64,000 nt of DNA from Lepidodermella squamata (GCA_047495785.1 JBLDXI010000018.1:496001-560000), one strand, 5' to 3'; shown: positions 1 to 48,136, counted from the stretch's first letter. The notes: generated by a model from the sequence alone, not told the origin. Translations and numbers: made by a program.

Positions 1-1353
1 CGACCCGATAAGCCCCTTCCGCTGAAGCCGCGTGATGGCTCGCGCCGCCCCCCGACCGGGGCACGGGCACGAAGTTTTCAACTGCGGCCGTTTGGCGCGA
101 TGCCGGAAATCGCGCAACCGGGCATCCACGAAAAGCTGGCCTACGCATTCGCCGCCCTCAACCCGCCTGATGTCAGCCGCGTTATCGGTGTCGGCTCCGC
201 AGCCATGTTGACTGCTGCGTTGGCTGGGGACGACGTGTTGGGATGCATCAGGCTGGTCAACACACTCAACGAGCTGTTCGGCCTGAGTCAAGTTGCAGCA
301 GCGCCAGCCGCAGCCGCGCCTGCCGCGGCAGTGCCTGCGCAACCACAAGATCAGCCGCCGCCGCCACCCCCGCCGCCGGCCGCGCCTGCTCCTCCTGCCG
401 CTGCTCAAGGCCCCGTCGTCTTTGCCGCCGCCGCTGCTGCTGCTGCCGCTGCTCCTTCTGCATCTGCGGCGTCGTCTCAAGCCGGTCCTAGCCATCAACA
501 GCTAGGACCATCGAACGCAACTGGTTTGTCGGCCCGTCAGCAGCCACCCAAGCGTACTGCAGGTGGTGAGCCTAAAAAACAACCGGCAAAGCGCGGTAGG
601 AAACCTGCAACAAGCACAACCACAGCAGCACCGGCACCACCGACATCTCAAGCCGCCGCTCAACAACCGTCAACATCTTCGCAGATGCCGCCGCTGCCAC
701 CGTCGACCAGTGCTGCCGCCACTACTGTTGCTGCCGCTGCCGATGCACCTTCGACCAGTGCTGACGACGGCGGAGCTGCTATTGCTGCTGCTGCTGCTAT
801 CGCTTCAAACACAGTGTTGATTGCTCCTGGTTCCTGCGACTTCACCCTGCCGGCATTCGCCAACTTCCTGAAAGCCAATGGCCGCATTACCGCGCTCCGT
901 CTCACAGACAAGGAACAATTCCTATTCAATCAGGTAATTTAACTGTTTTTATTTTACCTTCGCAAATAGTCGTCGATTGTTGATATAGTGTCATTTAACA
1001 TTGTTGTTTTAATGAACATTTTCAGGAAGTGATCTGTCGAGCTGCTCTTTTGGTCACGCGCGAGCGACTGGCTTATAACGTGCCAAACATCATGGGTGCG
1101 ATCGCGGTCTGCGCAGAGGCCGAGCATGGCGTCGCCTTCAGAGACGCCATTCGCAAAAAACTCGAATCCTATAAGCCGGCGGTCGTTAATACCGACAAAG
1201 TTCCGCAGCACGAAGGTGCGACTTTGCGCAAGGTAATTTTGTCGATTTTAAAACATCCCATTTTATTCTAAGCAATGTCTGTTTTTCTAGATCTACGAGG
1301 CCCACCTAAAATCGTTAACCCTTCCGCCCAAAAAATTGAACTTACCAAAGTAA
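1..1353 (+). CDS. RPA70-like OB-fold protein, copy A (5'-truncated by window edge); exons <1-933, 1026-1232, 1291-1353
   Basis: Near-identical to 22857-24212. GT/AG sites give phase-0 joins FLFNQ|EVICR and TLRK|IYEAH...LPK*. AATAAA at 1758-1763. Confidence 0.75.
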
Positions 1354-1837
1354 CTTCTTACTTCTTACTTCTTACTAAATTTTATTCCCTTCCTCACGTC
1401 TTCACGTCTTCCCTTCCTCTTTTCTGTTGTTTCCCGTTATCTCATGTAAATATAGCTCATATCATCTTTGGCCGTTTTGCGCCGTAGTATTAACATAATC
1501 ACAATTACTTCAATCCATCCATTCATCCATCCATACATCCTTCAATCCTTCAATCAACCACAATCACAACTCAATTCCTTTTTATATTGCGCCAAATGCA
1601 TCTTCTGTTCTTCGGATAGCTTTGTATTATTGCTTGAATTATGGTGTATATACTTATATCAATCCTTCTTTACACTGAAATTTTTCTTGATGAAAACACG
1701 TGTGGTACCTATGCGTACGGTATGTGGTATATGATGATGCAATAACTGTTGTAGTACAATAAATAATAATCGCATTTTTCCTAATAATTGTCGTATAATT
1801 TATTCCGTTATTTAGAAATTAAAAGGCTGAGTTTATA

Positions 1838-4416
1838 ATGAGCAATATTGATATAGAGGAAAATACTATCGGTTAGTTTTCGGTTGCTTTACATAGAAAA
1901 CAAATTTGTAATTAATCTTGGAACTTTTTAGAGCCCGTAGCTGCTGCTTCATCTGTTGATTCGCACGAGGCATTTATGAAATGGCTGAAAGGTGACTATT
2001 TGTTTGCATACATATTTTATGACGTCTTATAATATGGTGTTGTCGTTAAATCAGAACCGATGGACGCGGAAGAGATGTCTGAAACAGAGGATATGATCCA
2101 GGCAGCACTCAACTGGCTGTACAGTAAGTTGAACATATTTCTGTTTTCATTTTCAGATAATTATTTTTCCGAAAAGCGCCCGCTGAAGATGTCTCAAAAG
2201 ATGAGCACCTGTTCGAAAATGCTTCGAAAGCTTCAGAAATAGCGCTAATCGCTATCAAACAATACCAATCAGCTGCTCAAGGTAAGAAGTTTCAAGAAAA
2301 TGATGGCATTTTTTGATTGCTTGTTATGATTGTTGTGAAAATAATAATAATAATAATAATAGTATTTAAAATTCGATTTGCGCCATTTCATTCAGGGTCG
2401 TCGACAAACGCCGCCGCTGCCACTGTATCACCATACATCGCGAAGTTGCGGTGGAACACGACGAAGCTGCCGGACGGCAGTCGCGCGTACCTGATCAGCG
2501 TCTTCGGCCTGCGCAACATGCTCGAAGCCGTGCGGCTGCGCCGAACATTGCCGGCTACTTGCGAACGCCTCGTCTGCGTGCCATCGGCGTACCCTCTTCA
2601 GCCGTGCCGGGCAGTGATCGTCATGCGTGACGAACAAGCAGCACGCGCCATGCTCGACCGCGGTGTTCTACTCGTGCCGCCCAGCAACCGCCCGGTCAAT
2701 GTTATGCGGATGACGCCGCTGTCAAGCGACCACCAAGGCCTCTACAACATCTCGTCGCAGGCTTTCGTCGACAAGCTGCTGCCGGCGCAAATAAACCTCG
2801 CCACTGACTTGTTGCCGCTGCGCGAGTTGGCGGAAATGGCTGTCACCGGCCTCGACGCCGTCTCCATCCGCGCGAGCCCGCAGTACCGCTACGCCATCGA
2901 CCGCGCCAAGCGCACCGTGCTGCTGACGAACGTGCCGCTCGGCAAAACCGCCGACGATGTGCGCCAGTACGTGTTGCAGACGGCACCGGCATTATTTCTG
3001 CCGACCGACATCGAGAGCGTTCGCCTGCACAAGAACCAGCGCTCAACTGCGTGCGCCGCCGTCGTCCGCTTGCGCAACGAGGCAATTGCGGGCGAATTCG
3101 TCGATCGGCTCGGCAACGACCGTGTCGCCTTCGGCACGCAGCTGTTCGTCGACCGTGCCGGTGCTGATCGCCAGCTGCAGTCGGCCGATGAAAGGGAGCG
3201 ATGTGCAGTCGACTATGAATCGGCCGTCGACTACACGTTGGCCTATGTGCTCAAGGTTGACCGCCGCGTTACTCGTGCGCAGCTGCAAGCCGCCTACGCC
3301 TTGAGACTAAAACGCTTTAGTCTCAAAGCCTACGCCCAACATCAGGCGCACGATGTGCACGTCGTCCAGCCGCCCGAGGCGCGCTACGCCTTCGTCGCCG
3401 TTCGGTTCGCCACTCGCCAACAGCGCGACGCGTTCTGCCGCGCTCGGCCTCTATCGTACGGCCGCATGGTGGTGGCCGCGTCGTCTTTTCACGAAGCGCG
3501 TCAACAACACGACTTCCACCGCGTGCTGGAGCCGAGCGGCCAGGCGTGGCGGCACCTCGACCCGCGCTCGCCCGTACGTTACGCCGCTCACCTGCAAACC
3601 GGCAGCGACCTGGCGGCTTGGTTCAGCTGCTTTTTCGACGACGGCGAGCAGCCGACTGCTGAAGCGCTCGAAAGGCTACTCGAGATAAATTACACCGGCG
3701 CATTTCGTTCCTCGGCAGAAGCGTACATCAAAGCGCGCTTCACAAATGGCGCCGCTGCGCTGCAACACCTCAGCGCGCAAAGGACAGCTCGTCGCCAGCA
3801 CCCAATTTATAAGAAATTTTTTTGTCCCTTCAGCGTCGATATCATGTCTGTTCGTCACATTCTTAGTTTTCTCGACCCGAATTCACGTGAGCACGGTGAT
3901 CTCATGTTCTGCATTAGGCAAACAGTCCCCGCCAGCAATCGATTCGCTTTCGTCAAGGACCAACTGGCAATAATAGCCAACAATCAACATCTCATGACCC
4001 AGGTTTTTCATCATCGACTCACGGCGTGCTCAACCAACTGCCGCCTGTGTCACGTGCTCACTCCTGATTTCGATTATTTTGTTTCCGACCTCATGACCGT
4101 GCTTGGTTTACAAAAAAATCACTGTCTAGCTCCTAGCACTTACGTAGTTACCGATCTGATCGGCTCTGACCTCCTATATTTAGGCAAGACTAACCGTCCA
4201 CTGAAGCGGCCCATTGATCACATCGGTGACGTAGAACGCCTCGAGCTCAGCCGCACCATCCCTCACTTTTGCTACAAGCACGGTTTTCGCCACCCTCAAT
4301 ACCCTTTCCAAATGAACCTGATAGCTGTTAGCCCCAACGCACACTTTGTCGAACAGACTCTTATCGACGTTTGTTGGGAATTTACCTCGAATTTATCGAG
4401 ATCTGACTGGCGTTAG
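1838..4416 (+). CDS. 3xRRM + Cys-linker + GIY-YIG endonuclease fusion, copy A (~762 aa); exons 1838-1871, 1932-1991, 2055-2123, 2177-2281, 2396-4416
   Basis: All four introns are GT-AG, phase 1 and frame-compatible. RRM-like RNP2/RNP1 segments: VLLTNVP...CAAVVRL, AYVLKVD...RYAFVAVRF, and a weaker YIAKLRWNTT...RAVIVMRDEQAA. C-terminus CSTNCRLC...HC..STYVV...YLGKTNRPLKR..DH...EQTLI...SN matches the GIY-YIG motif order. Confidence 0.8.
3301..3327. mobile_element. 27-bp TIR micro-insertion or excision footprint with 9-bp TSD, in frame
   Basis: TTGAGACTAAA-acgc-TTTAGTCTCAA-a is flanked by GCCTACGCC at 3292-3300 and 3328-3336. It is absent from copy B, which has a single GCCTACGCC. Confidence 0.85.
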
Positions 4417-6357
4417 TTTTTTCTGCTCACGCTAGTCATCGATAAAAATTCTGGTAAATTTTCCATTATTGAAAAATTTAGTAGTTTTCAAAATTCAATT
4501 AAAGTTCGAGCTTTCTTTTGACTCTGACTTGCTTTTGGCTTTTGACTCTGTTTGCGTGTCTTGCAGTAGATTTTATTTCGAAAATTACTGTTATCGTTTG
4601 ATTTTGCCTCGTAATGATTTTGTTCATTTTTTATTGTGTTTGTATATCCTGCAATGTTATTACCATCGAAATTGCTTCATTTTAACAAGAAAATGACTAG
4701 ATAATGTCTCACTGCTTCATTTCCCCTCTCGGTGAACTCCAGATTATTTATCGGGCATCATGTCTCGGGCGTCGTTTGTTATGCGGTCTGAGAAGAAGAA
4801 GAAGAAGAAGAAGTCGTAAAAGCTTGCTATTAATGCAGCCGATGGTAACCGTGTCAGATGGTAAAGTACTCTGTATCATAAATATTGGTAACCATGGTCT
4901 TGAGATAGCAGTACCGGAGGCGTTTCCCAAAACTTTAAACATTGACTTGGTGACCTGAGAGTAGCAAGTTGGAAATAGCGCTTAACCAAAAAATGGCCTA
5001 GGTGCTCGTAATGAAACAAGCCAACGTTGATTGAATCATTTTGTTGATTTTATTTGTTTGATTGATCCGTCAAAACAAAGTAATAAATAGCAATAATAAT
5101 ATTTTTCTTGATTTTCAGCATGAAAATGCGAACTATAGAACATCATATCAAACATCATCGACAGCAGCAGCAGCAGACAAAAAATTAAAAATCTGTATAA
5201 TTGAGTTGATGTACCTATAGTCGAAAGTGTCGATTTCGCGATAATAATCACGTGAATAAGAGAAATTATCATGTACAACGAAACGAAAAAGAAAATCAGC
5301 AGCGCTATAGACTAATCAGAGGACAACAACAAAAACAAATTATTTTTGTTTGATTTTTCGATCCATTATAATTCGATCCATTATAATTCATAAATAACAG
5401 CCGATTGAAGCCATTTAAATGCTAAAAACTATAGTCTTTATAGCCAAATTTCTCAACTTCAGTATTGCACTCTCAACTTCATAATTAAGTGTATAAATGT
5501 CTTAATAAAAGGTAAATTGCTATTTATGAAGTTGGCAGTTCAAAAATAGCGCGGTAAATTGTTTTTTCTCGAGGTTGTTTGTTAATGAGGCGGCTATTAT
5601 TATCCTGGCACTTAGTCATCTCACGCGCACCTGTAAAAAAGATAGGTAGAGCGGTAGAGAGCAGCCAGCACACGAGCAGTAGTTTGAGGCGTCTGCTCTT
5701 CATATTATTCTTCGTGTTATTATTAGTGAGAGAACTTTGACAATAGGCTGTCAAGTTTCTTGCTTCTTGCTGCTGCTGCTTATAATTAAGCGAAGACGCA
5801 GCACGAGTGGTGTAGAGTCGAAAGTCGCGAGTGAACTTCACGTCGTTGGCAAGGTGACGATCGTCGTCGGCATTGCCGTGATTTCGCAGCAGCTTTTGCT
5901 TACAAGCCCCAACCAGGAAGACAGTACAACGACGTCATTATGGCGGGCGGCAATTATTCACCCGCAAGAAATAGGCTGATAATAATGCTACACTAACTAC
6001 AACTAACTCATCAACAAAATGGCTAATACGTTACTTATACACTCGTATTCAAATATATGTCAAAATTAACTGGTCTCCTCTACGTGTTGGCGTGTTATTT
6101 TTGAACATCCATTCGAGACGCGTAGGCTCGGGCAAGAATTTCACACGTAAAGACTTTGTTCACGTCGCGGAAACGAGTATACACCAATAATTTCCTCTCA
6201 TTTCATATCCGTTCTGCTCGGCTTGGCAATGATATACATTTAATTAATCTGTTAGATAATTAAGCAAAGCAAAAATGTGTGAAAATGCGACTACTCAACT
6301 GCTGTTAGTGTGCTGATGATGATGCTGCAGCCTAGCAGCGGCTGATGGCCGGCTCGA

Positions 6358-16598: not shown

Positions 16599-16930
16599 GT
16601 CAAGTTTGCCAAACAACCAGCGCTGTTGATGAGTATTTAACGACGGATAATCGTCTGTTAATCGCCGATTATTTACAGCAAGACCCGGAGTCAGCCGTAC
16701 TCGAGTCGCCCATCGTAACTCACCCACATCCTATCTCGTTTCCTTGATTGTGTATACCAGAGTGTGCAACCAACGGGATTTGGTGACCGATGAATTGGCA
16801 AACACGAACAACGCACGCAAGTTGACCATTGTCGCACATTGTTGTCAGATTTGACCTGGTATAGTGGCTCTGAATGCGTGCACCGCGCATTCCCGCTTTT
16901 TTCCTGCTCGATAACCGCGGCACGCAAGCT
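16599..16930 (+). ncRNA. Candidate structured ncRNA / conserved non-coding repeat, copy 1 (strand inferred)
   Basis: Long identical blocks shared with 29072-29374, separated by non-triplet indels. Helices: CATCG(16711)/CGATG(16788), TCACC/GGTGA, ATCTCGTT/AACGGGAT, ATAATCG/CGATTAT, ACGG/CCGT. Confidence 0.55.
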
Positions 16931-17414: not shown

Positions 17415-20376
17415 TTAGCCGACTGACACCTGAGATGGTTGTGTTCTCGGCCGGCGTAACTGATGCGCAACAGCGTCGACAGGGCGGCAAACAGCAAAAC
17501 CACAACTTTCAACTACCTGAAACAATTTGCTTCTTGGTTTTTCACTGAATTCACTGAGAGTCAATGCAAACATAGCACTGTTCTTGGCAAGTCTACCCTT
17601 CAAGGTATGTTTCTTCAATAGTTTCTTCAACTCGTAACTCGTAAGCTAGGTTGGCTAGGTAATGAAAATAAGTATTTTAAATAGCGACAATTTACATCGA
17701 TTACTTAATTTTTATCTAGCACTCATTGACTTTGTAAACAGTTGTAGCTTCAAGAGTTTTTAAATATTGATGCTGGAAAACAAAGCCGTATTACAAGCAG
17801 CCGAAAACTGCAGATAATGTTACTAGACTGGATATGTTTGATGTGTGATAGAGAGCGCGAGATTTACTTCTTCAAAGAGATCTTCGAATTCACATTGTGG
17901 CATCATTGGGGTCCAATTTCCCAACCATCACAACTCTTGCATGGTCGCAGCTTCTGCGTTTGTTACACTACGAATTAGCTAGTTGCACACATGAACAACC
18001 TCGAGTAAATTGAGATTTGGCAACAGGCGCTTCTTAAAATATAATGAGCTAGATGAACTAGTGCTGGGCCCACGTTACGCGCTTCAAACGCTTCAAGCGA
18101 AAACGACGGGATTTTGTGCCAAGTAATAGTCAGGTAGTCTACAACATCGTACTATGTGACGACGCGACGCGGTACAAGTACTTCCATTGAGTCGCGCAAT
18201 GGACAGTTTCGACCGACGCGATTTATCCTGTTATCCAAATCGGCGCATCCGTCGGCATCCGATACCTGAGTGTTGTAAAGGGTATCCTTGTATAATTCCT
18301 CTAGACTGCTACTGATATGAAATTCGACGACGAGTTAGTGTCGGGCCTACATTACGCAGCCTCAAAGACGACGGGATTTTGTGCCAAGTGTATATTAAAT
18401 TTTCGGAAACTTGAACGGCCAGGCGAGACCACATTTGTTCTAGAGCTATCACTTGTTGAAATCGATGTCTGATTTGTTATCGCTCTTTTCAATTTGTTTT
18501 ACATCAGCTTTGAGATGTTAGGTTTTGATGTTGCGTAATCGAAAGCGGTGGACATGCTCGAGTCCCAGAATCGCTTATCAGCTTTAAATTTCCAATTTCT
18601 TCCGTCTTACAATCATAAATCACTAAGGCTAAAAGTGGTGTTACTCGAGCCAACAGTGTTACAAACAGTGGTTAAGGCAGCCGTTATTAATAATCTATTA
18701 GATTCTTGTTAAAGTTTGTAGCAGGATGGGAATGTGCTGTGCAAAGTCAGAGCCATCATGTTAAAAACGCCCATCTCAAAATAAGGACGATTTTGAGCAG
18801 CAGGCTACCAGTAAAGCAGGCTCCGTGAAAGTAGGACTTGCGTAAGTGAGAACTGTATCGCTTATCGTGAGCTTGTGTTCTTGAAGTTGACGACGACAGT
18901 TATTAGATCTTTGCGAGGTTCCATTGATTTCATCTGATATATGTCTACTCTGATAAATGACATGTTTTTCATCTGTTTGCTAGTTTTCTTTACTGCCAAC
19001 ATTAGCAGCGAATTTCCGTTTTGTAGCGGCGATAATGGCAAGCTTTTCAGCACCATTCAGGTCTAAATCAAAGTTGTTTCCGGAATGAACTGTTATATTT
19101 CATCGCAGCTGTTTTGTTGTTGTCTTGCTGTATTTTGAGAATTTTCACTGGAATGAACTAGACAACGCAAACATATAGCTTATCACCCTCACATTTTAAC
19201 TGAAGCTTTACGCTTTTTGTTTGGCAGCTGCAGTTAACGAATTGGCGGATATAAAATTGGCGTTTGAGATAGATGCGTAAATAGTTAGTTATTAGGCCAT
19301 ATACCAGTGGTTACCGTAATTGTATGCTTTGTAATTATTAAAAGTGTTCAATTCTTTTTAGACTCAAACCCACTGTGACGACGCTTTGAGGAAAGCAATG
19401 CGCCCGCTCCTTCACAACTCGCCTCTACTTGATCTACACCAGCAGCAGCAGCAGCAACAGCGGTAGTACTAGATGCCGGTCAACGGGCTCAACGACAAGC
19501 CAACGCTATTCTGGTTCACGAGGAAAAATTGGAGGTTCAACCCGAAGAAGAAGAAGCATTTTCATTGCGTGAAGTGTCATCTCACGCCTTCAGCTGGCCT
19601 TTTTCACAAGTGTTGCAACGGTGCTAGTTGTCCCGAGAAGCAAATTTGAAAAAAACATGCAAATTGTGCAATTCTCTGTTTCAAATTGTCACTGTTTCAC
19701 GCGCGCCTTTGATTGCCTTGTTACTTCTCCAGATTATTTTATGTTTTGATTACATCATAAAGTCGGAACGGTTCTTCTGTGTTGAGCCGCGGATTCGTGT
19801 TATTCTCTCATAATAAAAACCGTGTGAACTTTTAAAAGTGGCGCCTGTTGTTTTTGAGTTGTTCTTGCACATTTGGTTATTATAGCGCGAGTTCGGATGT
19901 GCTGGTGACGAAGGAGCATCAGGTTGTTGCTGAAATCACCCACACAGCTGATAATTTATCTTATGCTAAACTCGCACGGTTCAACAACTTCATCAACTTT
20001 TCAACTAGCCGACGCCGCAGGTGACAGCTTTTTTTCATTTCTTCATTCTGTTTTTCACATAATTTATTGTGCAAAAAGTGATTTGAAATACATACAAGAG
20101 TGACCTATTTTACCGAAGCCGATACTATTGTTTGACCTGAAAGAGATGCGACAGGTGGGCAGTAAAATTGTCGATGGCCGCAATAAATCAATGTGAAATG
20201 CGAGAAAGGTCGGATGGTGGCAAGGTGGATAACTACGCCTTTGGCAAGATGTTGACCTAATGAGCACTAATTGCTGTTGTACCACGCTCAAGACATATAC
20301 ACTTCGGGTCAGTTGGGTCATGGTGATTGTTGATGATTTCGAAGCCACTCAGGGTTATGATAGTTGTTGCAAGCAT
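17415..20376 (-). pseudogene. Probable decayed, distant paralog of the OB-fold gene on the minus strand
   Basis: Stop-riddled segments in collinear order: IITLSGFEII (~20360; cf. VITINNFFI), SLLMLAVKKTSK (~19000; cf. ALLKRAVEDTVK), LAKNSAMFALTLSE (~17570; cf. LKANGRITALRLTD). Similarity is weak. Confidence 0.4.
18052..18760 (+). pseudogene. Three decayed fragments of the 5' end of the OB-fold gene (~18052-18265, ~18298-18435, ~18722-18760)
   Basis: CTCTAGACTGCTACTGATATGAAATTCGACGA matches 21491-21522. VYNIVLCDDA and WTVSTDAIYPVIQIG match 21509 ff. QDGNVLCKVRAI resembles EEGEILCQVRGI. Frameshifts and stops are present. Confidence 0.85.
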
Positions 20377-21508: not shown

Positions 21509-23276
21509 ATGAAATTTGACGAATTGAAGCCGGGCCGATATTACGCCTTCGAAGAAGGCGAGATCTTGTGCCAAGTTAGAGGCATATCAGATTTTAGGAA
21601 ACTCGAACGGCCGGGCGACCACACGCACGTCTATAACATCGTGCTGTGTGACGACGCGGCGCGGGCCGAGTGCTGCCTTCCAGCCGAGCGCTGGACAGTT
21701 GCCACCGACGCAGTATACCCAGTAATTCAAATCGGCGACATGGTGTGTATCCGATGCTTCGCTGTCAATGGGAGCGTAATCCGCACTTACGTGCTGGAGC
21801 CCTTCCTCCCGGACGTGCCGTCAATGACAATGGTGGCTGGTGGCCTGAGCGACCCCGAGAGTCGGATGTCACTGGAGCTCAAGACTGCCAATTCGCTTCA
21901 ATGGAGAAGCAGCCTCGAGAGGGCAATTCATCTGCAGCCGCTTGATTTCGCGCGCTATGCCGATGTTTACGGCTTTCGCTGGGTGTCGGAGGGCGAGTTG
22001 GAGGTGAACGTGAACATCCTCGGCCAGGTGACTCGCTTCACCGAGATAGGCGCCCACAAGTTCACAAATTGCCTCGGCAAGGAGCGTGTTGTTGAACAAG
22101 CCGATCTTGTCGTTAGGTTCGGTGGCTTCGAACGTGCCCGTATGTTCAACTTGCCATTTTAATCAAGGAAATAGAATATGCTTTTATTATTTAAAATACC
22201 CGATTATTTAGATTTCCATCTTCAATCTCTATATTCACTGTAAGGCCTCACTTTACAGGCTACGCGCGCGTTCCCATTGGCCGGCTTTTTTCGCGCATAC
22301 TGGAGAAGCGCGCGCTAATAACAGCCAAGTTGATGTTTCCCGAAAAAATTTGCGCATTTCTATTTTTTTTGCAATCTTTTGCAAAATTGGAGCGAGTGAC
22401 CTCACGCGAACACGCCACATCATGTAATCATGCGCGTGCCATGACACAGGCTCACTTCATTTTGGTGTAAACTTCGGCGTAAAATTCCTAGCTTGAGTTT
22501 TGTTTTCAGTAAAAATGAAACTGCAAATGTCCTAATTTTTGGCGAGGTGTTGCTAATTAAGAACTTGTGAGGGCTGAAATTGTAAAATAGAATAGGATAA
22601 GAACAAACGCGGTAACATCAATTAATTCCATGTTTATTTTTCAGCAATGCGCATATACGGCGACAAGGAGTGTGCCCTGCTCAAGCGGGCAGTTGAGGAT
22701 ACCGTCAAGATGGGCCTGCCGCTGTGGGTTTACATCGCCCAAGCGCTCGTTCGGCAAGACCTGAGCTTATCGACTTGTGGCCGCACTATGTTCGCGTTCA
22801 GCAACTCGCGATTGGGACATCTTGTCGCTGGTTTCGACGACAACTTCCAGTTCCGCCGACCCGATAAGCCCGTTCCGCTGAAGCCGCGTGATGGCTCGCG
22901 CCGCCCCCCGACCGGGGCACGGGCGCCTAGTTTTCAGCTGAAGCCGTTTGGCGCGATGCCGGAAATCGCGCAACCGGGCATCCACGAAAAGCTGGCCTTC
23001 GCATTCGCCGCCCTCAACCCGCCTGATGTCAGCCGCGTTATCGGTGTCGGCTCCGCGGCCATGTTGACTGCTGCGTTGTCTGGGGACGACGTGATTGGAT
23101 GCGTCAGGCTGGTCAACACACTCAACGAGCTGTTCGGCCTGAGTCAAGTTGCAGCAGTAGCAACAGCACAGCCAGCCGCGGCAGTGCCTGCGCAACCACA
23201 AGATCAGCCGCCGCCGCCACCCCCGCCGCCGGCCGCGCCTGCTCCTCCTGCCGCTGCTCAAGGCCCCGTCGTCTTT

Positions 23277-23311
<35 letters not shown>

Positions 23312-24212
23312 TACTGCTGCTGCTGCTGCTGCCGCTGCTCCTTCTGCATCTGCGGCGTCGTCTCAAGCCGGCCCTAGCCATCAACAGCCAGGACCATCGA
23401 ACGCAACTATTCAGCAGCCACAGAAGCGTACTGCAGGTGGTGAGCCTAAAAAACAAGCGGCAAAGCGCGGTAGGAAACCTGCAACAAGCACAACCACAGC
23501 AGCATCGGCACCACCGACATCTCAAGCCGCAGCTCAACAACCGTCAACATCATCACAGATGCCGCCGCTGCCACCGTCGACCAGTGCTGCCGCCGCTGCC
23601 GATGCACCTTCGACCAGTGCTGACGACGGCGGAGCTGCTATTGCTGCTGCTGCTGCTATCGCTTCAAACACAGTGTTGATTGCTCCCGGCTCTTGTGATT
23701 TTAGCCTGCCGGCATTCGCCAACTTCCTGAAAGCCAATGGCCGCATTACCGCGCTCCGTCTCACAGACAAGGAACAATTCCTATTCAATCAGGTAATTTA
23801 ACTGTTTTTATTTTACCTTCGCAAATAGTCGTCGATTGTTGATATAGTGTCATTTAACATTGTTGTTTTAATGAACATTTTCAGGAAGTGATCTGTCGAG
23901 CTGCTCTTTTGGTCACGCGCGAGCGACTGGCTTATAACGTGCCAAACATCATGGGTGCGATCGCGGTCTGCGCAGAGGCCGAGCATGGCGTCGCCTTCAG
24001 AGACGCCATTCGCAAAAAACTCGAATCTTATAAGCCGGCGGTCGTTAATACCGACAAAGTTCCGCAGCACGAAGGTGCGACTTTGCGCAAGGTAATTTTG
24101 TCGATTTGAAAACATCCCATTTTATTCTAAGCAATGTCTGTTTTTCTAGATCTACGAGGCCCACCTAAAATCGTTAACCCTTCCGCCCAAAAAATTGAAC
24201 TTGCCAAAGTAA
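21509..24212 (+). CDS. RPA70-like tandem OB-fold protein with Ala/Pro linker and C-terminal domain, copy B (~682 aa); exons 21509-22139, 22645-23792, 23885-24091, 24150-24212
   Basis: CQVRGISDFRKL...VYNIVLCDD...VYPVIQIGDMVCI resembles RPA70 DBD-A. VNILGQVTRF...ADLVV...|PMRIYGDKE...LSLSTCGRT resembles DBD-B. Splice phases are compatible. Upstream non-coding exons are possible. Confidence 0.7.
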
Positions 24213-27200
24213 CTTCTTACTTCTTACTTCTTACTAAATTTTCTTCCCTTCCTCACGTCTTCACGTCTTCCCTTCCGCTTTTCTGTTGTTTCCCGTTATC
24301 TCATGTAAATATAGCTCATATCATCTTTGGCCGTTTTGCGCCGTAATATTAACACAATCACAATTCCTTCAATCCACCCATCCATCCATCCATACATCCT
24401 TCAATCCTTCAATCACAACTCAATTCCTTTTTATATTGCGCCAAATACATCTTCTGTTCTTCGGATAGCTTTGTATTATTGCTCGAATTATGCTGTATAT
24501 ACTTATATCAATCCTTCTTTACACTAAAATTGTTCTTGATGAAAACGCGTGTGGTACCTATGCGGTCGGTATGTGGCATGATGATGCAATAACTGTTGTA
24601 GTACAATAAATAATAATCGCATTTTTCCTAATAATTGTCGTATAATTTCCATTATTTAGAAATTAATAGGCTGAGTTTATAATGAGCAATATTGATATAG
24701 AGGAAGATACTATCGGTTAGTTTTCGGTTAACTCTACATAGAAAACAATTTTGTAATTAATCTTGGAACTTTTTAGAGCCCGTAGCTGCTGCTTCATCTG
24801 TTGATTCGCACGAGGCATTTATGAAATGGCTGAAAGGTGACGATTTGTTTGCATACATATTTTATGACGTCTTATAATATGGTATGTTGTCGTTAAATCA
24901 GAACCGATGGACGCGGAAGAGATGTCTGAAACAGAGGATATGATCCAGGCAGCACTCAACTGGCTGTACAGTAAGTTCAACATATTTCTGTTTTCATTTT
25001 CAGATAATTATTTTTCCGAAAAGTGCCCGCTGAAGATGTCTCAAAAGATGAGCACCTGTTCGAAAATGCTTCGAAAGCTTCAGAAATAGCGCTAATCGCT
25101 ATCAAACAATACCAATCAGCTGCTCAAGGTAAGAAGTTTCAAAAAAATGATGGCATTTTTTGATTGCTTGTTATGATTGTTGTGAATATAATAATAATAA
25201 TAATAGTATTTAAAATTCGATTTGCGCCATTTCATTCAGGGTCGTCGACAAGCGCCGCCGCTGCCACTGTATCACCATACATCGCGAAGTTGCGGTGGAA
25301 CACGACGAAGCTGCCGGACGGCAGTCGCGCGTACCTGATCAGCGTCTTCGGCCTGCGCAACATGCTCGAAGCCGTGCGGCTGCGCCGAACATTGCCGGCT
25401 ACTTGCGAACGCCTCGTCTGTGTGCCATCGGCGTACCCTCTTCAGCCGTGCCGGGCGGTGATCGTCATGCGTGACGAACAAGCAGCACGCGCCATGCTCG
25501 ACCGCGGTGTTCTACTCGTGCCGCCCAGCAACCGCCCGGTCAATGTTATGCGGATGACGCCGCTGTCAAGCGACCACCAAGGCCTCTACAACATCTCGTC
25601 GCAGGCTTTCGTCGACAAGCTGCTGCCGGCGCAAATAAACCTCGCCACTGACTTGTTGCCGCTGCGCGAGTTGGCGGAAATGGCTGTCACCGGCCTCGAC
25701 GCCGTCTCCATCCGCGCGAGCCCGCAGTACCGCTACGCCATCGACCGCGCCAAGCGCACCGTGCTGCTGACGAACGTGCCGCTCGGCAAAACCGCCGACG
25801 ATGTGCGCCAGTACGTGTTGCAGACGGCACCGGCATTATTTCTGCCGACCGACATCGAGAGCGTTCGCCTGCACAAGAACCAGCGCTCAACTGCGTGCGC
25901 CGCCGTCGTCCGCTTGCGCAACGAGGCAATTGCGGGCGAATTCGTCGATCGGCTCGGCAACGACCGTGTCGCCTTCGGCACGCAGCTGTTCGTCGACCGT
26001 GCCGGTGCTGATCGCCAGCTGCAGTCGGCCGATGAAAGGGAACGATGTGCAGTCGACTATGAATCGGCCGTCGACTACACGTTGGCCTATGTGCTGAAGG
26101 TCGACCGCCGCGTTACTCGTGCGCAGCTGCAAGCCGCCTACGCCCAACATCAGGCGCACGATGTGCACGTCGTCCAGCCGCCCGAGGCGCGCTACGCCTT
26201 CGTCGCCGTTCGGTTCGCCACTCACCAACAGCGCGACGCGTTCTGCCGCGCTCGCCCTCTATCATACGGCCGCATGGTGGTGGCCGCGTCGTCTTTCCAC
26301 GAAGCGCGTCAACAACACGACTTCCACCGCGTGCTGGAGCCGAGCGGCCAGGCGTGGCGTCACCTCGACCCGCGCTCGCCCGTTCGTTACGCCGCTCACC
26401 TGCAAACCGGCAGCGACCTGGCGGCTTGGTTCAGCTGCTTTTTCGACGACGGCGAGCAACCGACTGCAGAAGCGCTCGAGAGGCTACTCGAGATAAATTA
26501 CACCGGCGCATTTCGTTCCTCAGCAGAAGCGTACATCAAAGCGCGCTTCACGAACGGCGCCGCTGCGCTGCAACACCTCAGCGCGCAAAGGACAGCTCGT
26601 CGCCAGCACCCAATTTATAAGAAATTTTTTTGTCCCTTCAGCGTCGATATCATGTCTGTTCGTCACATTCTTAGTTTTCTCGACCCGAATTCACGTGAGC
26701 ACGGTGATCTCATGTTCTGCATTAGGCAAACAGTCCCCGCCAGCAATCGCTTCGCTTTCGTCAAGGACCAACTAGCAATAATGGCCAACAATCAACATCT
26801 CATGAGCCAGGTTTATCATCATCGACTCACGGCGTGCTCAACCAACTGCCGCCTGTGCCACGTGCTCACTCCTGATTTCGATTATTTTGTTTCCGACCTC
26901 ATGACCGTGCTTGGTTTACAAAAAAATCACTGTCTAGCTCCTAGCACTTACGTAGTTACCGATCTGATCGGCTCTGACCTCCTATATTTAGGCAAGACTA
27001 ACCGTCCACTGAAGCGCCCCACTGATCACATTGGTGACGTAGAGCGCCTCGACCTCAGCCGCACCATCCCTCACTTTTGCTACAAGCACGGTTTTCGCCA
27101 CCCTCAATACCCTTTCCAAATGAACCTGTTAGCTGTTAGCCCCAACGCACACTTCGTCGAACAGACTCTTATCGACGTTTGTTGGGAATTTACCTCGAAT

Positions 27201-27367
27201 TTATCGAGATATGACTGGCGTTAGTTATTCCTGCTCACGCTACTTGATATAAAAATTCTGGTAAAATTTTGCATTCAAAATTATTTTTTCAAAACTCAAT
27301 TAAGTAATTAGACGAGCTGTCTTTTGACTCTGGCTTTTGACTCTTACGTGTCTGTGTGCCTTGCAGT
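22857..27367 (+). repeat. Copy B of the duplicated cassette (left boundary not definable in this window)
   Basis: Direct alignment with 1-4567. Confidence 0.95.
24682..27224 (+). CDS. 3xRRM + Cys-linker + GIY-YIG endonuclease fusion, copy B (~750 aa); exons 24682-24715, 24777-24836, 24902-24970, 25024-25128, 25240-27224
   Basis: Same exon structure and motifs as copy A. ORF is open and the differences are mostly synonymous. Confidence 0.8.
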
Positions 27368-29071
27368 TGATCTCGGTGATCTCCTGATTACTCATCGTTA
27401 ATCAAGTCTGAAAATCGCCGTTTATTGTTCTGCGGTCTGGCTAGGCTATATACCCATAGAATTTCTTTTAATTTATGTGCCAAAATGAATTAATTGAGCG
27501 ATGCTGAGAAATTTTATCAGAATTTTATTATACCTAAGATGGATGTTATGATTTTCTGAATAATTGTTAATCTTAAATATTTCTGAAACATATGGAAAAA
27601 TCATCTCGATCGTGGTTAATTTGAAGTTAATATCTGAAATAAGCTGACTTTCGCTTTGGCTGACTATCTTTTCTAAGCCTCTCCTCTCAAATATCGTGAA
27701 TTGGATGACAAATGTAATCGAGTTGCCTCCTGTATTAACCTTCCGGCTAAATATTTGTGTGTAAATTTATACCATCAAGCCATTTAAACTATATCGCTCG
27801 GTTGATATATACATGATATATACATGTATTGGTTTGCGATTCCATTTTACATTTCCGCTTCAATTGCTAGTGGCAGGATTCAAGAATGACAACGATGTAA
27901 CAACAACGAATTATGAATTTATGAATGTCTAAAGCACCATATTCATCGGTGTGTGCTGGCCTCGTAACAAGCCGAGAATTATCACCGTTTCTAGATTCGA
28001 AAAATATTTATAACATCATTTTCACGATTATTCTATTCTGTCATCGTTGCAATAAATCTTACACGGAGAGTGTTTTCAATCCTTCAATTTTTTGTCAAGT
28101 CGCGGATAATCGATAATCACATTATTTTTTCGTAAAGAAATGGCGTTACATGTGACTGGTTGCTCATTGAGTCGCGCTGATTTCGGTTGATTGATTAGAT
28201 TCAATATGAAGTAGGATAAGAAATATTGAAAATGATAGCGTGATCCATTTTACACTTGATCCATTGATTTTTAATATTGCCTTCGACTTGAAACACACAG
28301 GACAGGCGAGAAAAGTAATTGACCATGACCGCTATAAATCAATCTGAAAACATTCATTCAATGTAAAAATCTGACCTTCCGGACTCAGAGGTAAGTGAGA
28401 ACTTGTCCGTGTTAGGTTTCGACTAAATTTAATCGGCCTTGAATAAAATAGTAGGTACTTATACCGACCGCAATGTGTAATCCGCGCACTCGTCCACTCG
28501 CCTTTTGACGCGAAAGGCCTCATTTGAAAAAAAAACAGCCAATGTAAAATCGCCCCGTTTTATTTCAATTTTGCTACTGAGGTGTCACAGGATTATCGCA
28601 TTTCGAGCTTACAAGGAATTGAGTGTCACGTCGCTGAACTGGGCCACGTGGACCGTCACAACACCCTTTTCTCTACATCATAGCTTAGTTTGAGCAACCT
28701 TTTGTTTAGGGTGTGGTGTCATGTAATTAGATGTGCAACCGATGCGAACGTCAAATTGATTGATACCTACTTATTTAAAAAATATTTACTTCCCACGGGC
28801 CCACCAGCGGGGCGCCCATTTGTGAAGGGCAGCGGTTGCGCAACACGGGCGGCTTTGTTAGCAGGTGCCCGGGTGCGTACTCATTTATTTAAACCTTGGA
28901 GGAGTAGTTTAAACTGGGGGGCCGTATTCTATTCAAGGATTAGAAACCATTACTCCAAGATTTGACTGTAATGCGTTAAACATTCGTAAGTAGTAAGTTA
29001 CATGTTTATTTTATACCATTTACTATACAACTCATCTTTATTATCTTTCATCAGCTTGCTCCAGGTATACT

Positions 29072-29374
29072 CAACAGCGCATTTGATGCGTATTCAACGA
29101 CGGATAATCGACCTTAATCGCCGATTATTCACGATACTTACAGAAGAGTCAGCCGTACTCGAGTGACCCATCGTAACTCACCCACATCTCGTTTCCATAA
29201 CATACTACATACCCACCAATAAGGTATTGTGTGGCAGCCAACGGGATTTGGTGACCGATGAATTGGCAAACACACAAGTAGACCATTGTCGCACATAGTT
29301 GTCAGAATTGACGTGGCACGGTGTACGAGATGTATTATATACCTACCGAACAACTACGATAACCGACGCAAGCT
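29072..29374 (+). ncRNA. Candidate structured ncRNA / conserved non-coding repeat, copy 2
   Basis: Shares AACGACGGATAATCG, TTAATCGCCGATTATT, GAGTCAGCCGTACTCGAGT, CCCATCGTAACTCACCCACATC, CCAACGGGATTTGGTGACCGATGAATTGGCAAACAC and GACCATTGTCGCACAT with copy 1. Confidence 0.55.
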
Positions 29375-33709: not shown

Positions 33710-35023
33710 ATGACAGATAAGTCGAGCCGTTCCATTTTTGGTGAGAGATGAAGACTTTGATTGATGAAACTAAATTTTACTCAATTTTGCTTTCTTGTTC
33801 AGTCGGAAACATTCCTTACGAAGCGACGGAGGAACAGCTGCGTGATATCTTTGTTCAAGCTGGCCCGATTATCGCATTCAGACTGGTGTACGACAGAGAA
33901 ACTGGTAAACCCAAAGGCTACGGTTTCTGCGAATATCAAGGTATTCCTGCTCGTATGTTTCTTGGCGATCTTTATCTACTGATATGTTATAGATGCTGAA
34001 ACTGCTCAGAGTGCTATTCGTAATTTGTCGAACGTTGAAATCAACGGTCGCAATCTGCGCATTGGTTTCGCTTCGGGTGAACAGACACACCAAGCTATCG
34101 ATTCATTTCAAGGTTACATCCAGCCTGACACTGAACGAATTCATGGCGACCCTGTTGAGCCGGAACGAGCCCCTGAAGCTATCAGCCGAGCCGTTGCATC
34201 CCTCCCTCCAGAGCAGATGTATGAACTGATGAAGCAAATGAAAGTTTGCATTCAGAACAATCCAAACGAGGCGCGTAACATGCTGCTGCAAAACCCCCAG
34301 CTGGCCTACGCGTTACTACAAGCTCAAATAATTATGAAAATCGTCGACCCTCAAGTTGCAATGAGTTTGCTGCACCGTCCTCGCGATACCCCGGTTGTGC
34401 CGTTGCAGCCACCGGCCGCTCCTCCTGGAGCCGCTGGAATGAACCCGTACGCACCGGCTCCACAGGCCATGGTCCCGCAACAGCCGATGGGCATTCCGCC
34501 TCAAGTCATTCCCCCACCGATGCCGGTTCAGACTAATGGCATCGTGCCCCAACAGCCACCCGTGCAGCCACCGCCGGCACCGGTCGTCGCACCAGTGCCA
34601 GCAGCGCCTCAATCTGCTCAACCGCCTCGTCTGGTCGACCCGCGCATGATGCGCAACCAGTCGCAGTCGGGCGCCCCGCCACCGCCCGTCGCACCAGCTC
34701 CGATGCCAGCTGCACCGGCTCCTCAGGCCGCGCCTGTTTTACCATCCCTGGGTGCAATGGGCGCCAGCGGTGGAGGCGCTGCTGCTGACCAGGAGCGAAA
34801 TCAGCTCATTATGCAGGTGAGTAAAGCAGTGATATAATTGCGAAAAGTTTTTAAAAGTAGAATTCATAATGAAATTGATCGGCGTAATAGAATGTTAAAA
34901 CGTGTGTTTCTTTCGTTTTAGGTGTTGAGTTTGCGCCCGGAACAAATCGAAATGCTGCCGCCGGACCAGCGCCAGTCGATTCTGTTGCTCAAGGAACAAA
35001 TCAGCAAAAACATGGCTTTCTGA
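33710..35023 (+). CDS. CSTF2: Cleavage stimulation factor 64 kDa subunit; exons 33710-33740, 33803-33940, 33993-34816, 34922-35023
   Basis: [20 protein letters not shown]...[14 protein letters not shown], hinge [26 protein letters not shown]-terminal [31 protein letters not shown]. Confidence 0.97.
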
Positions 35024-36828: not shown

Positions 36829-37040
36829 CCTCTTTATTCTTGCAAGGTTCATCTTTCTCTTTCCTACTATCTTTCCGTCTTTCAGGCCCTGCTGCTCGCA
36901 AGTCGCGTCACGTGATTTATTTTGCAAAATTTGGAATTACATGTAAAATTAAATTTAGTATTTAATTAAAATAATTTGCTCAATTGGGGTAAAAAATTTG
37001 ATTTAAAATTTAGCGGCACGCGTGGCGCGGAGCAACTTTT
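36829..37040 (+). promoter_or_regulatory. Duplicated E-box / AT-spacer / E-box-like module, copy 1
   Basis: TTTCAGGCCCT..GCTGCTCGCAA.TCGCGTCACGTGAT, 97-nt AT-rich spacer, GCGGCACGCGTGG. Homologous to 47911-48136. Confidence 0.55.
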
Positions 37041-37928: not shown

Positions 37929-38626
37929 CACCCAGCACCTATGAACTGCTCAAGAACCTATACTCAAGTTATACTGTCGTTTTTCATGCTCACAAGCTGG
38001 TCTTATGTGTCTTTGTAGATTAATTACTCCATACTCTATACATAGAGCTTTACTATCGCATCGTCAATCTTTATCATTCTAGACGACGTTTAACAATCAG
38101 CTAATTAATTAATCAATTAACAAACAAGTGTACTTGTTTTAAACTGTTTTCCGCTCGCATGTGCGTCTAGTATGATTACCTGACATACGCCAACTTTAAA
38201 TTTGCGATATATTCCGATTTATTATATACTTATGCATAATTGCTTTTCTCAATTACACATAGATATTTTGCTGTTGTACAGCAACAACATTATTTTCGGC
38301 TAATCTATTGCTGATTACCAGCTGATTTCCTGCGATCACTGCAATCTGCTCTAATATCTACATATTTTCCTGCCAATACCGCTGCCGTTGCTGTCTTGAA
38401 CCGGTGGCAGTTGTTAACAGGAGCTACACTAGCAGTCGCACGCTACACGACAATTATCCCACTTTTTCCTTCCTGTTCTTATTCATTTTTTTGCGACCAA
38501 TACCAGCCAATTTTGATTTTATTTTTACTCAAAGTCGCATCTCTTGTTTTTCTTGTTTCTTCTTGTTCTTGCTCTTTGTGCCATCTTTCCCCCTAACAAA
38601 ATTTACCAAATTGTTTCGAGTGAATA

Positions 38627-39651
38627 ATGGCAAGTGGCTCAGGTGCGTATTGGCTTGGCGATGGCAATGGTGAGGAGCAAGTAGCTAGGGCTCTTGAATT
38701 GGGGGTTGGGCTAGTTGAGGAAGGGACGGCAGGGAATCAGGAAAATCGGGGTGGGGCGAGCAACTCTAAGCGGGGTGGTGGTGCTAGTGGTGGTGGTCGT
38801 GGTGGTCGTAAGAAAACTAGCAGTAGTTTCGTGCCTGCAAGGGCATTTCTACCCACCTTGCCTAGCCAACAGTCGATCCACTTGTTGACGGCTAGTGATG
38901 CTCGCGCTGCGTCGGCGACGGCTCCTTCTGCCAGTGACGTCGAGTTTGTCGACTACGACTTTGATGATGATGTCGTCATGGTGGAGGGGCCTAGTAGCCA
39001 GACCAGGTCCGAAAATAACATCGCGGACGACGACCTGCCCAACGACGATATGATTGATGGCGACGTCGACGCCGGGTTGTACTCGAGGCTGTCCGACCTC
39101 GCTAGCACTAGTACACCCGACGTCACGTTAAAGAAGCCATGTCGGGCAGTCGTCCGGGGCATCACTAGCGACTGCCGTGACCTGCGGATGATGAAGAAAC
39201 GCGGGCGTCATACCCACGTCTATAATGTCACCCTCTGTGACAATCTGGATGACCCTGCGAGTTCTCTTCTCCCAGGTCAGCGATGGACTTGGCTGGTGTC
39301 TGATCGCGTATTCAAAAACCTTAAAATTGGAACTGAAGTAATTACTATCAACAATTTCTTCATTTTCAATGAAATCCCCGCCCAGAATGAGCGCTTCTTT
39401 CCGGATGTGCGCTCTGCTTGCGTCCCCTCGACGTCTCCTGCGAAATCGTACCGCCGCACAATCGGCGCATGCTAGATTTCAAGGAGGCGTCGTCGATCGC
39501 GATCGTCGCACAGCCGAAGGATGCGCTCAGTTTGCCTTCGCCATCGCCATTCCGGTATTCGGACGATTATCATCGCTTCGTTCGGCCGTTGGATGGCGAC
39601 GGTGAGGTGAACTTGTCACTAGCTGGTGCCGTTGTCGGTTTCGAGCCGTGA
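38627..39651 (+). pseudogene. Diverged paralog of the RPA70-like OB gene with an acidic/Gly-rich N-extension; frameshift near 39410-39420
   Basis: VRGI...HTHVYNVTLCD...RWT...FPDV (first frame), then LDFKEASS...RYSDDY...EVNLSLAGAVVGF (second frame), align to 21509-22139. Confidence 0.75.
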
Positions 39652-47910: not shown

Positions 47911-48136
47911 CTCTCTTTATTCTTTACATTAGTATTCCTATCTTTCCCCCGTCTTTCTCTTTCAGGCCCTAATGCTGCTCGCAACTCGCGTCACGTGATT
48001 TAATGTCCAAAATTTCGAATTTTATGTAAATTAAATTTTTTTTATTAGATTAAATTAATTTGCACAATTTAGGTGAATAATTTATTTTAAAAATTCGCGG
48101 CACACGTGGGTGAGGGAGGTCCAAGCCATATAAAAG
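47911..48136 (+). promoter_or_regulatory. Duplicated E-box / AT-spacer / E-box module, copy 2, followed by a TATA box
   Basis: GTCACGTGA at 47990-47998, 98-nt AT-rich spacer, GCGGCACACGTGG at 48097-48109, TATAAAAG at 48129-48136. Confidence 0.6.

Follow-up and report, generated by a model that had tools for sequence, protein, structure and literature searches.

A duplicated pair of orphan genes in Lepidodermella squamata, one of them with a predicted GIY-YIG-like domain

We investigated a two-gene cassette that occurs twice in a 64,000-nucleotide (nt) stretch of the Lepidodermella squamata genome (GCA_047495785.1 JBLDXI010000018.1:496001-560000; hereafter the window, in which all coordinates are given). 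In copy 2 of the cassette, gene 1 lies at 21509–24212 on the plus strand, as do gene 2 and its domains, and comprises four exons (21509–22139, 22645–23792, 23885–24091 and 24150–24212) that encode 682 amino acids (aa), with GT–AG at all junctions and an unbroken frame. Gene 2 lies at 24682–27224 and comprises five exons (24682–24715, 24777–24836, 24902–24970, 25024–25128 and 25240–27224), likewise in frame with GT–AG introns, that encode 750 aa. The ATG of gene 2 is located 469 nt downstream of the gene 1 stop codon, and the two genes are co-oriented. A preliminary description of this locus had proposed two spliced genes on the same strand at this distance, and the splice models confirmed all of these points. 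The gene 1 protein begins with a globular part of about 330 aa, continues through a low-complexity stretch that is rich in Ala, Pro, Gln and Ser and carries a Lys/Arg-rich patch, and ends with about 140 further residues. Residue numbers for the domains of gene 2 count along the protein of its large exon (660 aa). The spacer between the two genes contains the microsatellites (ACTTCTT)x3 and (ATCC)n/TCCATCAA-type repeats, at 24212–24235 and 24365–24414, starting directly after the gene 1 stop codon.

Self-BLAST of the window revealed a single long direct repeat, in which positions 1–4571 (copy 1, plus strand) match 22857–27371 with 94% identity including gaps. Copy 1 is truncated at the left edge of the window; it holds the 3′ part of gene 1 (1–933, 1026–1232 and 1291–1353) and gene 2 under the same exon model (1838–1871, 1932–1991, 2055–2123, 2177–2281 and 2396–4416; 762 aa), and the frames of both genes are open. 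This agrees with the earlier observation that the pair recurs at 1–4567 with both open reading frames (ORFs) intact. The duplicated unit is at least 4.6 kb long, and probably about 6 kb. Its right border is ragged and diffuse rather than a sharp terminus: in its final 150 nt, where indels also occur, identity is down to 77%, and homology stops near 27371/4571. Identity also varied among features: the copies were 96% identical in gene 1 exon 2, 98–100% identical over intron 2 to exon 4 of this gene (100% in the 92-nt intron), and 97% and 98% identical in the spacer and in gene 2, respectively. Such patchy identity would fit gene conversion between the copies rather than one recent duplication date. 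Apart from the cassette, nothing sizeable was duplicated in the interval between the copies; one large ordinary segmental duplication including the neighbours was rejected, as self-BLAST shows the cassette alone to be repeated.

The two genes are maintained as coding sequence, as indicated by the substitutions between the copies. In the large exon of gene 2, we counted 23 synonymous and nine non-synonymous changes, corresponding to a synonymous divergence (dS) of 0.050 and a non-synonymous divergence (dN) of 0.006. The resulting dN/dS of 0.12 deviates strongly from the neutral expectation that about three quarters of changes are non-synonymous (binomial P = 1.8e-8), a pattern in the aligned sequences that indicates purifying selection on gene 2. 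For gene 1 exon 2, much of which is low-complexity sequence, dN/dS was 0.40 (P = 0.007). In addition, the cassette is host-like in composition: the GC content at third codon positions (GC3) is 0.61–0.73 in its exons and 0.54–0.79 in neighbouring conserved host genes, whereas the GC content of introns and spacers is 0.35–0.38 (gene 1 intron, 0.38). We also considered whether the ORFs could be chance ORFs or pseudogenes, and rejected this because of the dN/dS values, the contrast of exon GC3 with intron and spacer GC, and splice sites that are intact in each copy.

The sole public run with the cassette is of genomic DNA; its reads cover the introns, and no joints were seen. In this run, contigs identical to copy 2 had a depth of 34–41 and contigs divergent from it by a few per cent had a depth of 57–78, as would roughly be expected if two copies had been collapsed. 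At 23949 and 25187, two loose contig ends lead into sequence matching neither copy in the window; each gene probably has one or more further copies elsewhere in the genome. The cassette had been called multicopy beforehand; two copies of one block are present in the window, whereas further copies elsewhere are only hinted at by these loose ends.

Both genes appear to be lineage-restricted (orphan) genes according to every protein search we made. Searches of both whole proteins and of domain-sized pieces against Pfam, PHROGs, NCBIfam and PADLOC at E ≤ 10 returned nothing relevant, nor did sequence and profile searches of the Protein Data Bank (PDB) with both proteins. The gene 2 large exon had no match among 8000 word-sharing candidates of a library of 5.8 billion proteins, and none at E ≤ 0.001 in an exhaustive phmmer search of 1.84 billion representatives; gene 1 exon 1 was blank in the word-indexed search of the 5.8 billion proteins. 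Furthermore, tblastn of the gene 2 C-terminus against phage genomes gave only noise, and scans of metagenome and viral contigs for the cassette were blank. The AlphaFold models were poor because no alignment of relatives was available: the predicted local distance difference test score (pLDDT) was 35 when the large exon of gene 2 (660 aa) was modelled and 39 when only its last 141 aa were.

Near the C-terminus of gene 2, residues 566–656 (26937–27209) quite likely form a GIY-YIG domain, for which nuclease activity is predicted. The residues concerned are Y570-V-V, Y582-L-G-K-T, R592, H596, K-H616-G, E640 and N653. The GIY and YIG tyrosines, Y570 and Y582, are 12 residues apart, compared with 11 in I-TevI (Y6–Y17), and they are followed by R592 (+10), E640 (+48) and N653 (+13), compared with R27 (+10), E75 (+48) and N90 (+15) in the T4 record of I-TevI. 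A regular expression for the GIY-YIG layout matched only this stretch of the protein and 7 of 20000 composition-preserving shuffles, the test being post hoc. Among the ESM Atlas neighbours of residues 520–660 were GIY-YIG clusters at 0.91, 0.90 and 0.90, which, with only 139 shared features, constitute a lead. We then aligned the protein by hhalign with GIY-YIG profiles of phage T4 (SegA/B/C/F/G, I-TevI, I-TevII and EndoII) and E. coli (UvrC, Cho and YhbQ). The alignments reached P = 0.015–0.03, whereas other segments and reversed sequences gave P ≥ 0.076; the GIY, YIG, KHG and Asn positions were in register, and a whole-protein query peaked on the same stretch. In the low-confidence model (pLDDT 39), a strand pair falls exactly at the Y570 and Y582 motifs. 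Conversely, the GIY-YIG family profile (Pfam PF01541 or equivalent) did not match the pieces of gene 2 at E ≤ 10, and Foldseek searches of the PDB with this model gave no meaningful match. The GIY-YIG assignment made previously is plausible on the spacing of the motif, the language-model neighbours and the weak profile alignments, but is not confirmed by Pfam or structure models. These three lines, each weak and independent of the others, converge on about 100 residues.

Among known GIY-YIG enzymes, the T4 enzymes I-TevI and Seg resemble gene 2 in how the two catalytic Tyr, the Arg, the Glu and the Asn are spaced, and in having a KHG turn ahead of the third strand. They are also similarly modular, combining a nuclease domain with a separate nucleic-acid-binding part. 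However, their nuclease domain is N-terminal and their DNA-binding part C-terminal, whereas in gene 2 the nuclease-like domain is C-terminal, behind RRM-like domains, and the profile similarity of gene 2 to the T4 enzymes is marginal (P about 0.02). In animals, the GIY-YIG nucleases SLX1 and ANKLE1/LEM-3 are host-encoded, intron-containing and widely conserved, with RING/PHD and with ankyrin and LEM partner domains, respectively. Gene 2 resembles them in its introns and multi-domain layout, but has other partner domains and no detectable relative.

We also considered the endonucleases of Penelope-like elements (PLEs), to which the preliminary description had attributed GIY-YIG domains with a Cys linker in general. 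A Cys cluster, C532-x3-C536-x2-C539(-H540) (26835–26858), is located 30 residues upstream of the GIY-like Tyr, and C532-STN-C536-RL-C539 fits the CX2-5CxxC linker pattern, which occurred by chance in 2.4% of composition-preserving shuffles. This linker has been described in several PLE endonuclease clades, including the Neptune/Naiad type (PMC8557442). All canonical endonuclease-bearing (EN+) PLEs have a CCHH motif, whose two Cys lie within the GIY-YIG core, with R, H, E and N further downstream; the Hydra and Chlamys PLE endonucleases lack CCHH, and the Hydra-type linker layout is modified (PMC8557442). In gene 2, CCHH is absent, as the interval between Y570 and Y582 (VVTDLIGSDLL) contains no Cys. 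Family scans of gene 2 and of the 50 longest remaining ORFs in the window turned up no reverse transcriptase (RT), transposase or helicase, which confirms the earlier statement that the cassette has neither RT nor transposase. Searches against Rfam, including hammerheads, yielded nothing at gathering score in the window and nothing at E ≤ 1 in 16–30 kb, and no tRNA was found near the cassette. Lacking CCHH, RT and a hammerhead, the gene 2 domain falls outside the canonical PLE endonucleases. Gene 2 resembles PLE endonucleases (cd10442 type) in the C-terminal position of the domain, the upstream CX2-5CxxC, the GIY...YIG core and the downstream R/H/E/N, but differs from PLEs in having no pseudo-long terminal repeat (pLTR), in its multiple introns and in carrying RRM-like domains in place of RT. 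Of the PLE-type features, the linker-like Cys cluster and the R/H/E/N residues are thus present, whereas CCHH and sequence similarity to PLE ORFs are missing.

These features bear on the origin of gene 2. It may be a host gene that acquired its nuclease domain by domestication of a PLE endonuclease, with fusion to RNA-binding domains, an origin to which we give limited credence. Such an origin would fit the CX3CX2C cluster that precedes a GIY-YIG-like core in which R, H, E and N are present, as this layout is found in Neptune/Naiad and, modified, in the Hydra type, and as Hydra and Chlamys elements also lack CCHH (PMC8557442). The missing CCHH of canonical EN+ PLEs argues against it, as do the absence of detectable similarity to any protein, PLE proteins included, and the rate at which the Cys triplet arose in shuffles. 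This explanation is compatible with a host gene pair, since it concerns origin only.

Upstream of the Cys cluster, gene 2 contains three segments that had been described as RRM domains. Segment 2 (residues 160–262; 25719–26027) aligned by hhalign with a profile of 23 CstF-64 RRM sequences (P = 4.5e-5, probability 69%, 77 columns, starting from the RNP2 strand), whereas the remaining segments and reversed controls gave P ≥ 0.03 with the same profile (segment 1, P = 0.67; segment 3, P = 0.09). It has an RNP2-like VLLTNVP, and its RNP1 position (CAAVVRL) lacks aromatics. Segment 1 (residues 12–108; 25275–25565) is putative and was delimited by its sequence pattern and by strand and helix elements in the low-confidence model. 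Segment 3 (residues 272–358; 26055–26315), also putative, has an RNP1-like RYAFVAV, and residues 280–349 adopt a beta-alpha-beta-beta-alpha-beta order in the only stretch of the model at pLDDT 50–61. When the poor gene 2 model was compared with Swiss-Prot by Foldseek, 22 of the top 30 matches were RRM proteins, a result to which shared disorder may contribute. Pfam RRM_1 did not match gene 2, and an internal repeat test among the three segments was not above controls. With moderate confidence, therefore, profile alignment points to one RRM-like domain (segment 2), and two more (segments 1 and 3) are possible. Of the three RRM domains proposed earlier, residues 160–262 have moderate profile support, whereas the other two segments offer only weak hints.

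At this point, the domain resemblances as a whole could be ascribed to chance, in which case the cassette would consist of two fast-evolving orphan genes with neither nuclease nor RNA-binding activity. The blank searches of curated profile libraries and PDB sequences at E ≤ 10, the two poor AlphaFold models, the GIY-YIG hhalign values of only P = 0.015–0.03 and the post hoc nature of the motif test are all in line with this explanation. We nonetheless regard it as unlikely, given that three independent lines, weak as each is, meet on the same 100 residues, that five catalytic positions are spaced almost residue for residue as in I-TevI, and that RRM-like segment 2 was detected with clean controls.

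An alignment of the two copies showed that gene 2 of copy 1 carries an in-frame 36-nt insertion within RRM-like segment 3 (3292–3336, plus strand). The insertion is made up of a 27-nt near-perfect palindrome (3301–3327; core TTGAGACTAAA.CG.TTTAGTCTCAA) and a 9-bp direct duplication, GCCTACGCC, whose two occurrences, at 3292–3300 and 3328–3336, bracket the palindrome. This pattern is unique in the window and is also present in a contig of the public DNA run. Its form suggests a footprint left by transposon excision, or else a minimal foldback insertion.

Gene 1 had been described as an RPA70-like single-stranded DNA-binding protein with two OB folds, a description that found no support in family, PDB, language-model or internal-repeat tests. 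Pfam gave no OB or RPA match at E ≤ 10, PDB sequence and profile searches returned unrelated chains, and the ESM Atlas neighbours were unnamed, at 0.79. The two halves of the N-terminal part showed no internal OB1/OB2 repeat above controls. The first 100 residues have a pattern reminiscent of OB strand order, in sequence only. RPA70-like OB-fold genes are known Helitron cargo. Unlike such cargo, gene 1 has no OB match and no Rep/Hel, hairpin or CTRR end near it: the ORFs of the window contained no Rep/Hel family, and no 3′ hairpin/CTRR end was found.

The N-terminal domain of gene 1 (about 100 residues) forms a small family within the window. Two broken fragments of the first exon, including the start-codon region, lie at 18098–18472 (plus strand; tblastn, 45–56% identity); they were also seen as DNA repeats, and the stops and frameshifts in their ORFs mark them as pseudogene remnants. 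At 38624–39472 (plus strand), an intact 282-aa ORF has a Gly/Arg-rich (RGG-like) N-terminus ahead of a gene 1-type domain, its C-terminal 120 aa being 37% identical to the N-terminal domain of gene 1. Judging from these alignments, the domain occurs in more than one architecture. The locus had been reported to contain decayed OB paralogs; gene 1 paralogues do exist and the fragments at 18 kb are broken, but the ORF at 39 kb is intact and the OB nature is unsupported. No relative of gene 2 was found beside the paralogues at 18 kb or 39 kb, and the pairing of gene 1 with gene 2 is thus seen only in one duplicated unit.

Taken together, we slightly favor the explanation that the cassette is a lineage-restricted animal host gene pair, copied together by a small dispersed duplication, with both copies intact. 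The product of gene 2 is most likely an enzyme acting on nucleic acids, probably a GIY-YIG nuclease whose N-terminal part is RNA-binding-like. Its RRM-like part, together with the Cys cluster, would place it on RNA or a single-stranded substrate, and the GIY-YIG domain would then cut one strand. The gene 1 protein, with its basic patch and long low-complexity linker, might act as a nuclear partner or neighbor. We infer the folds, the nuclease activity and the partnership of the two proteins. The suggestion in the preliminary description that the cassette encodes a domesticated nuclease is compatible with a host gene pair.

Several observations weigh against a host gene pair of this kind. No profile library or structure model confirms any of the domains. 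Copy 1 is cut at the left edge of the window, so that the left border of the duplicated unit falls beyond it. Only the cassette was duplicated and not its neighbors, as transposition would do, and the loose contig ends hint at further copies elsewhere. In a probable RNA run from a differently labelled organism, 45% of the words of the CstF-64 exon described below were present and the cassette was not listed, which is weak evidence against strong cassette expression there.

Some of these observations would also be expected if the cassette were cargo of an undescribed mobile or selfish element, the self-copying module of the preliminary description, whose GIY-YIG protein would nick while its RRM-like part binds the element transcript. 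We consider this improbable. It retains some credence because duplication was confined to the cassette, with the intervening genes single, and because more copies, including a third suggested by the DNA run, seem to exist; the Cys linker and GIY-YIG layout, moreover, recall PLE endonucleases. However, no polymerase, RT, transposase or Rep/Hel was found in the 64 kb, and no terminal repeats, whether inverted or direct, flank the unit. The right border shows no terminal inverted repeat, hairpin, poly-A or informative tandem repeat, with no inverted repeat in 27200–27420, and identity there decays gradually rather than ending abruptly. The nine exons in all, the host-like composition and the gene 1 paralogues without gene 2 are also difficult to reconcile with such cargo. 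Thus, there is no evidence that the gene pair is a mobile or self-copying element, and no positive hallmark of mobility was observed.

Stand-alone GIY-YIG ORFs are known from the Terminons of rotifers (PMC8557442, PMC5537684). The cassette resembles Terminons in that GIY-YIG is encoded apart from RT, beside co-oriented ORFs, in an invertebrate genome. It differs from them in being ringed by conserved host genes, namely a G-protein-coupled receptor (GPCR), dachshund and CstF-64, and in having no RT. A more speculative proposal is that gene 2 is a free-standing RNA-binding nickase acting in trans on retroelements or RNA–DNA intermediates (for example, by supplying the endonuclease that endonuclease-less PLEs lack), or that it forms, together with gene 1, a polymerase-less self-copying cassette; we regard this as highly improbable.

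A literature search found no description of an animal protein that joins RRM-type domains to a GIY-YIG nuclease. If the C-terminal domain of gene 2 is an active GIY-YIG domain, gene 2 would encode an animal protein uniting the two. This would raise the questions of whether RNA can steer eukaryotic GIY-YIG nucleases and whether PLE endonucleases have been domesticated. At present, the finding is a well-defined, selected and duplicated orphan gene pair, and not yet evidence for a new selfish system.

Between the two copies lie single genes that agree with the unduplicated GPCR and dachshund reported previously. One is an ORF matching 7tm_1 (rhodopsin-type receptor; E = 4.6e-5, below the Pfam gathering score), and the other matches the dachshund homology domain (DHD; E = 4e-17). 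Further along, near the cassette, we detected the hinge of CstF-64 (CstF2; E = 1.5e-29). The best relatives of the CstF-64 hinge exon (33983–34834) were from molluscs, a brachiopod, nemerteans, annelids and flatworms, with 45–70% identity. This places the host with spiralians; it appears, from these protein matches, to be an animal that groups with them and has no close relative in the protein library.

The preliminary description had also mentioned structured RNA candidates near the cassette. No Rfam family matched the short non-coding repeats of the window, and the repeats of about 300 nt lie outside the duplicated unit. These non-coding repeats are located at 16.6 kb (16618–16859), 29.1 kb (29075–29316) and 48.2 kb, with none beside copy 1. 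A further short repeat pair is found at 36870–37025 and 47952–48109, and the scattered repeat families of the window are 75–81% identical.

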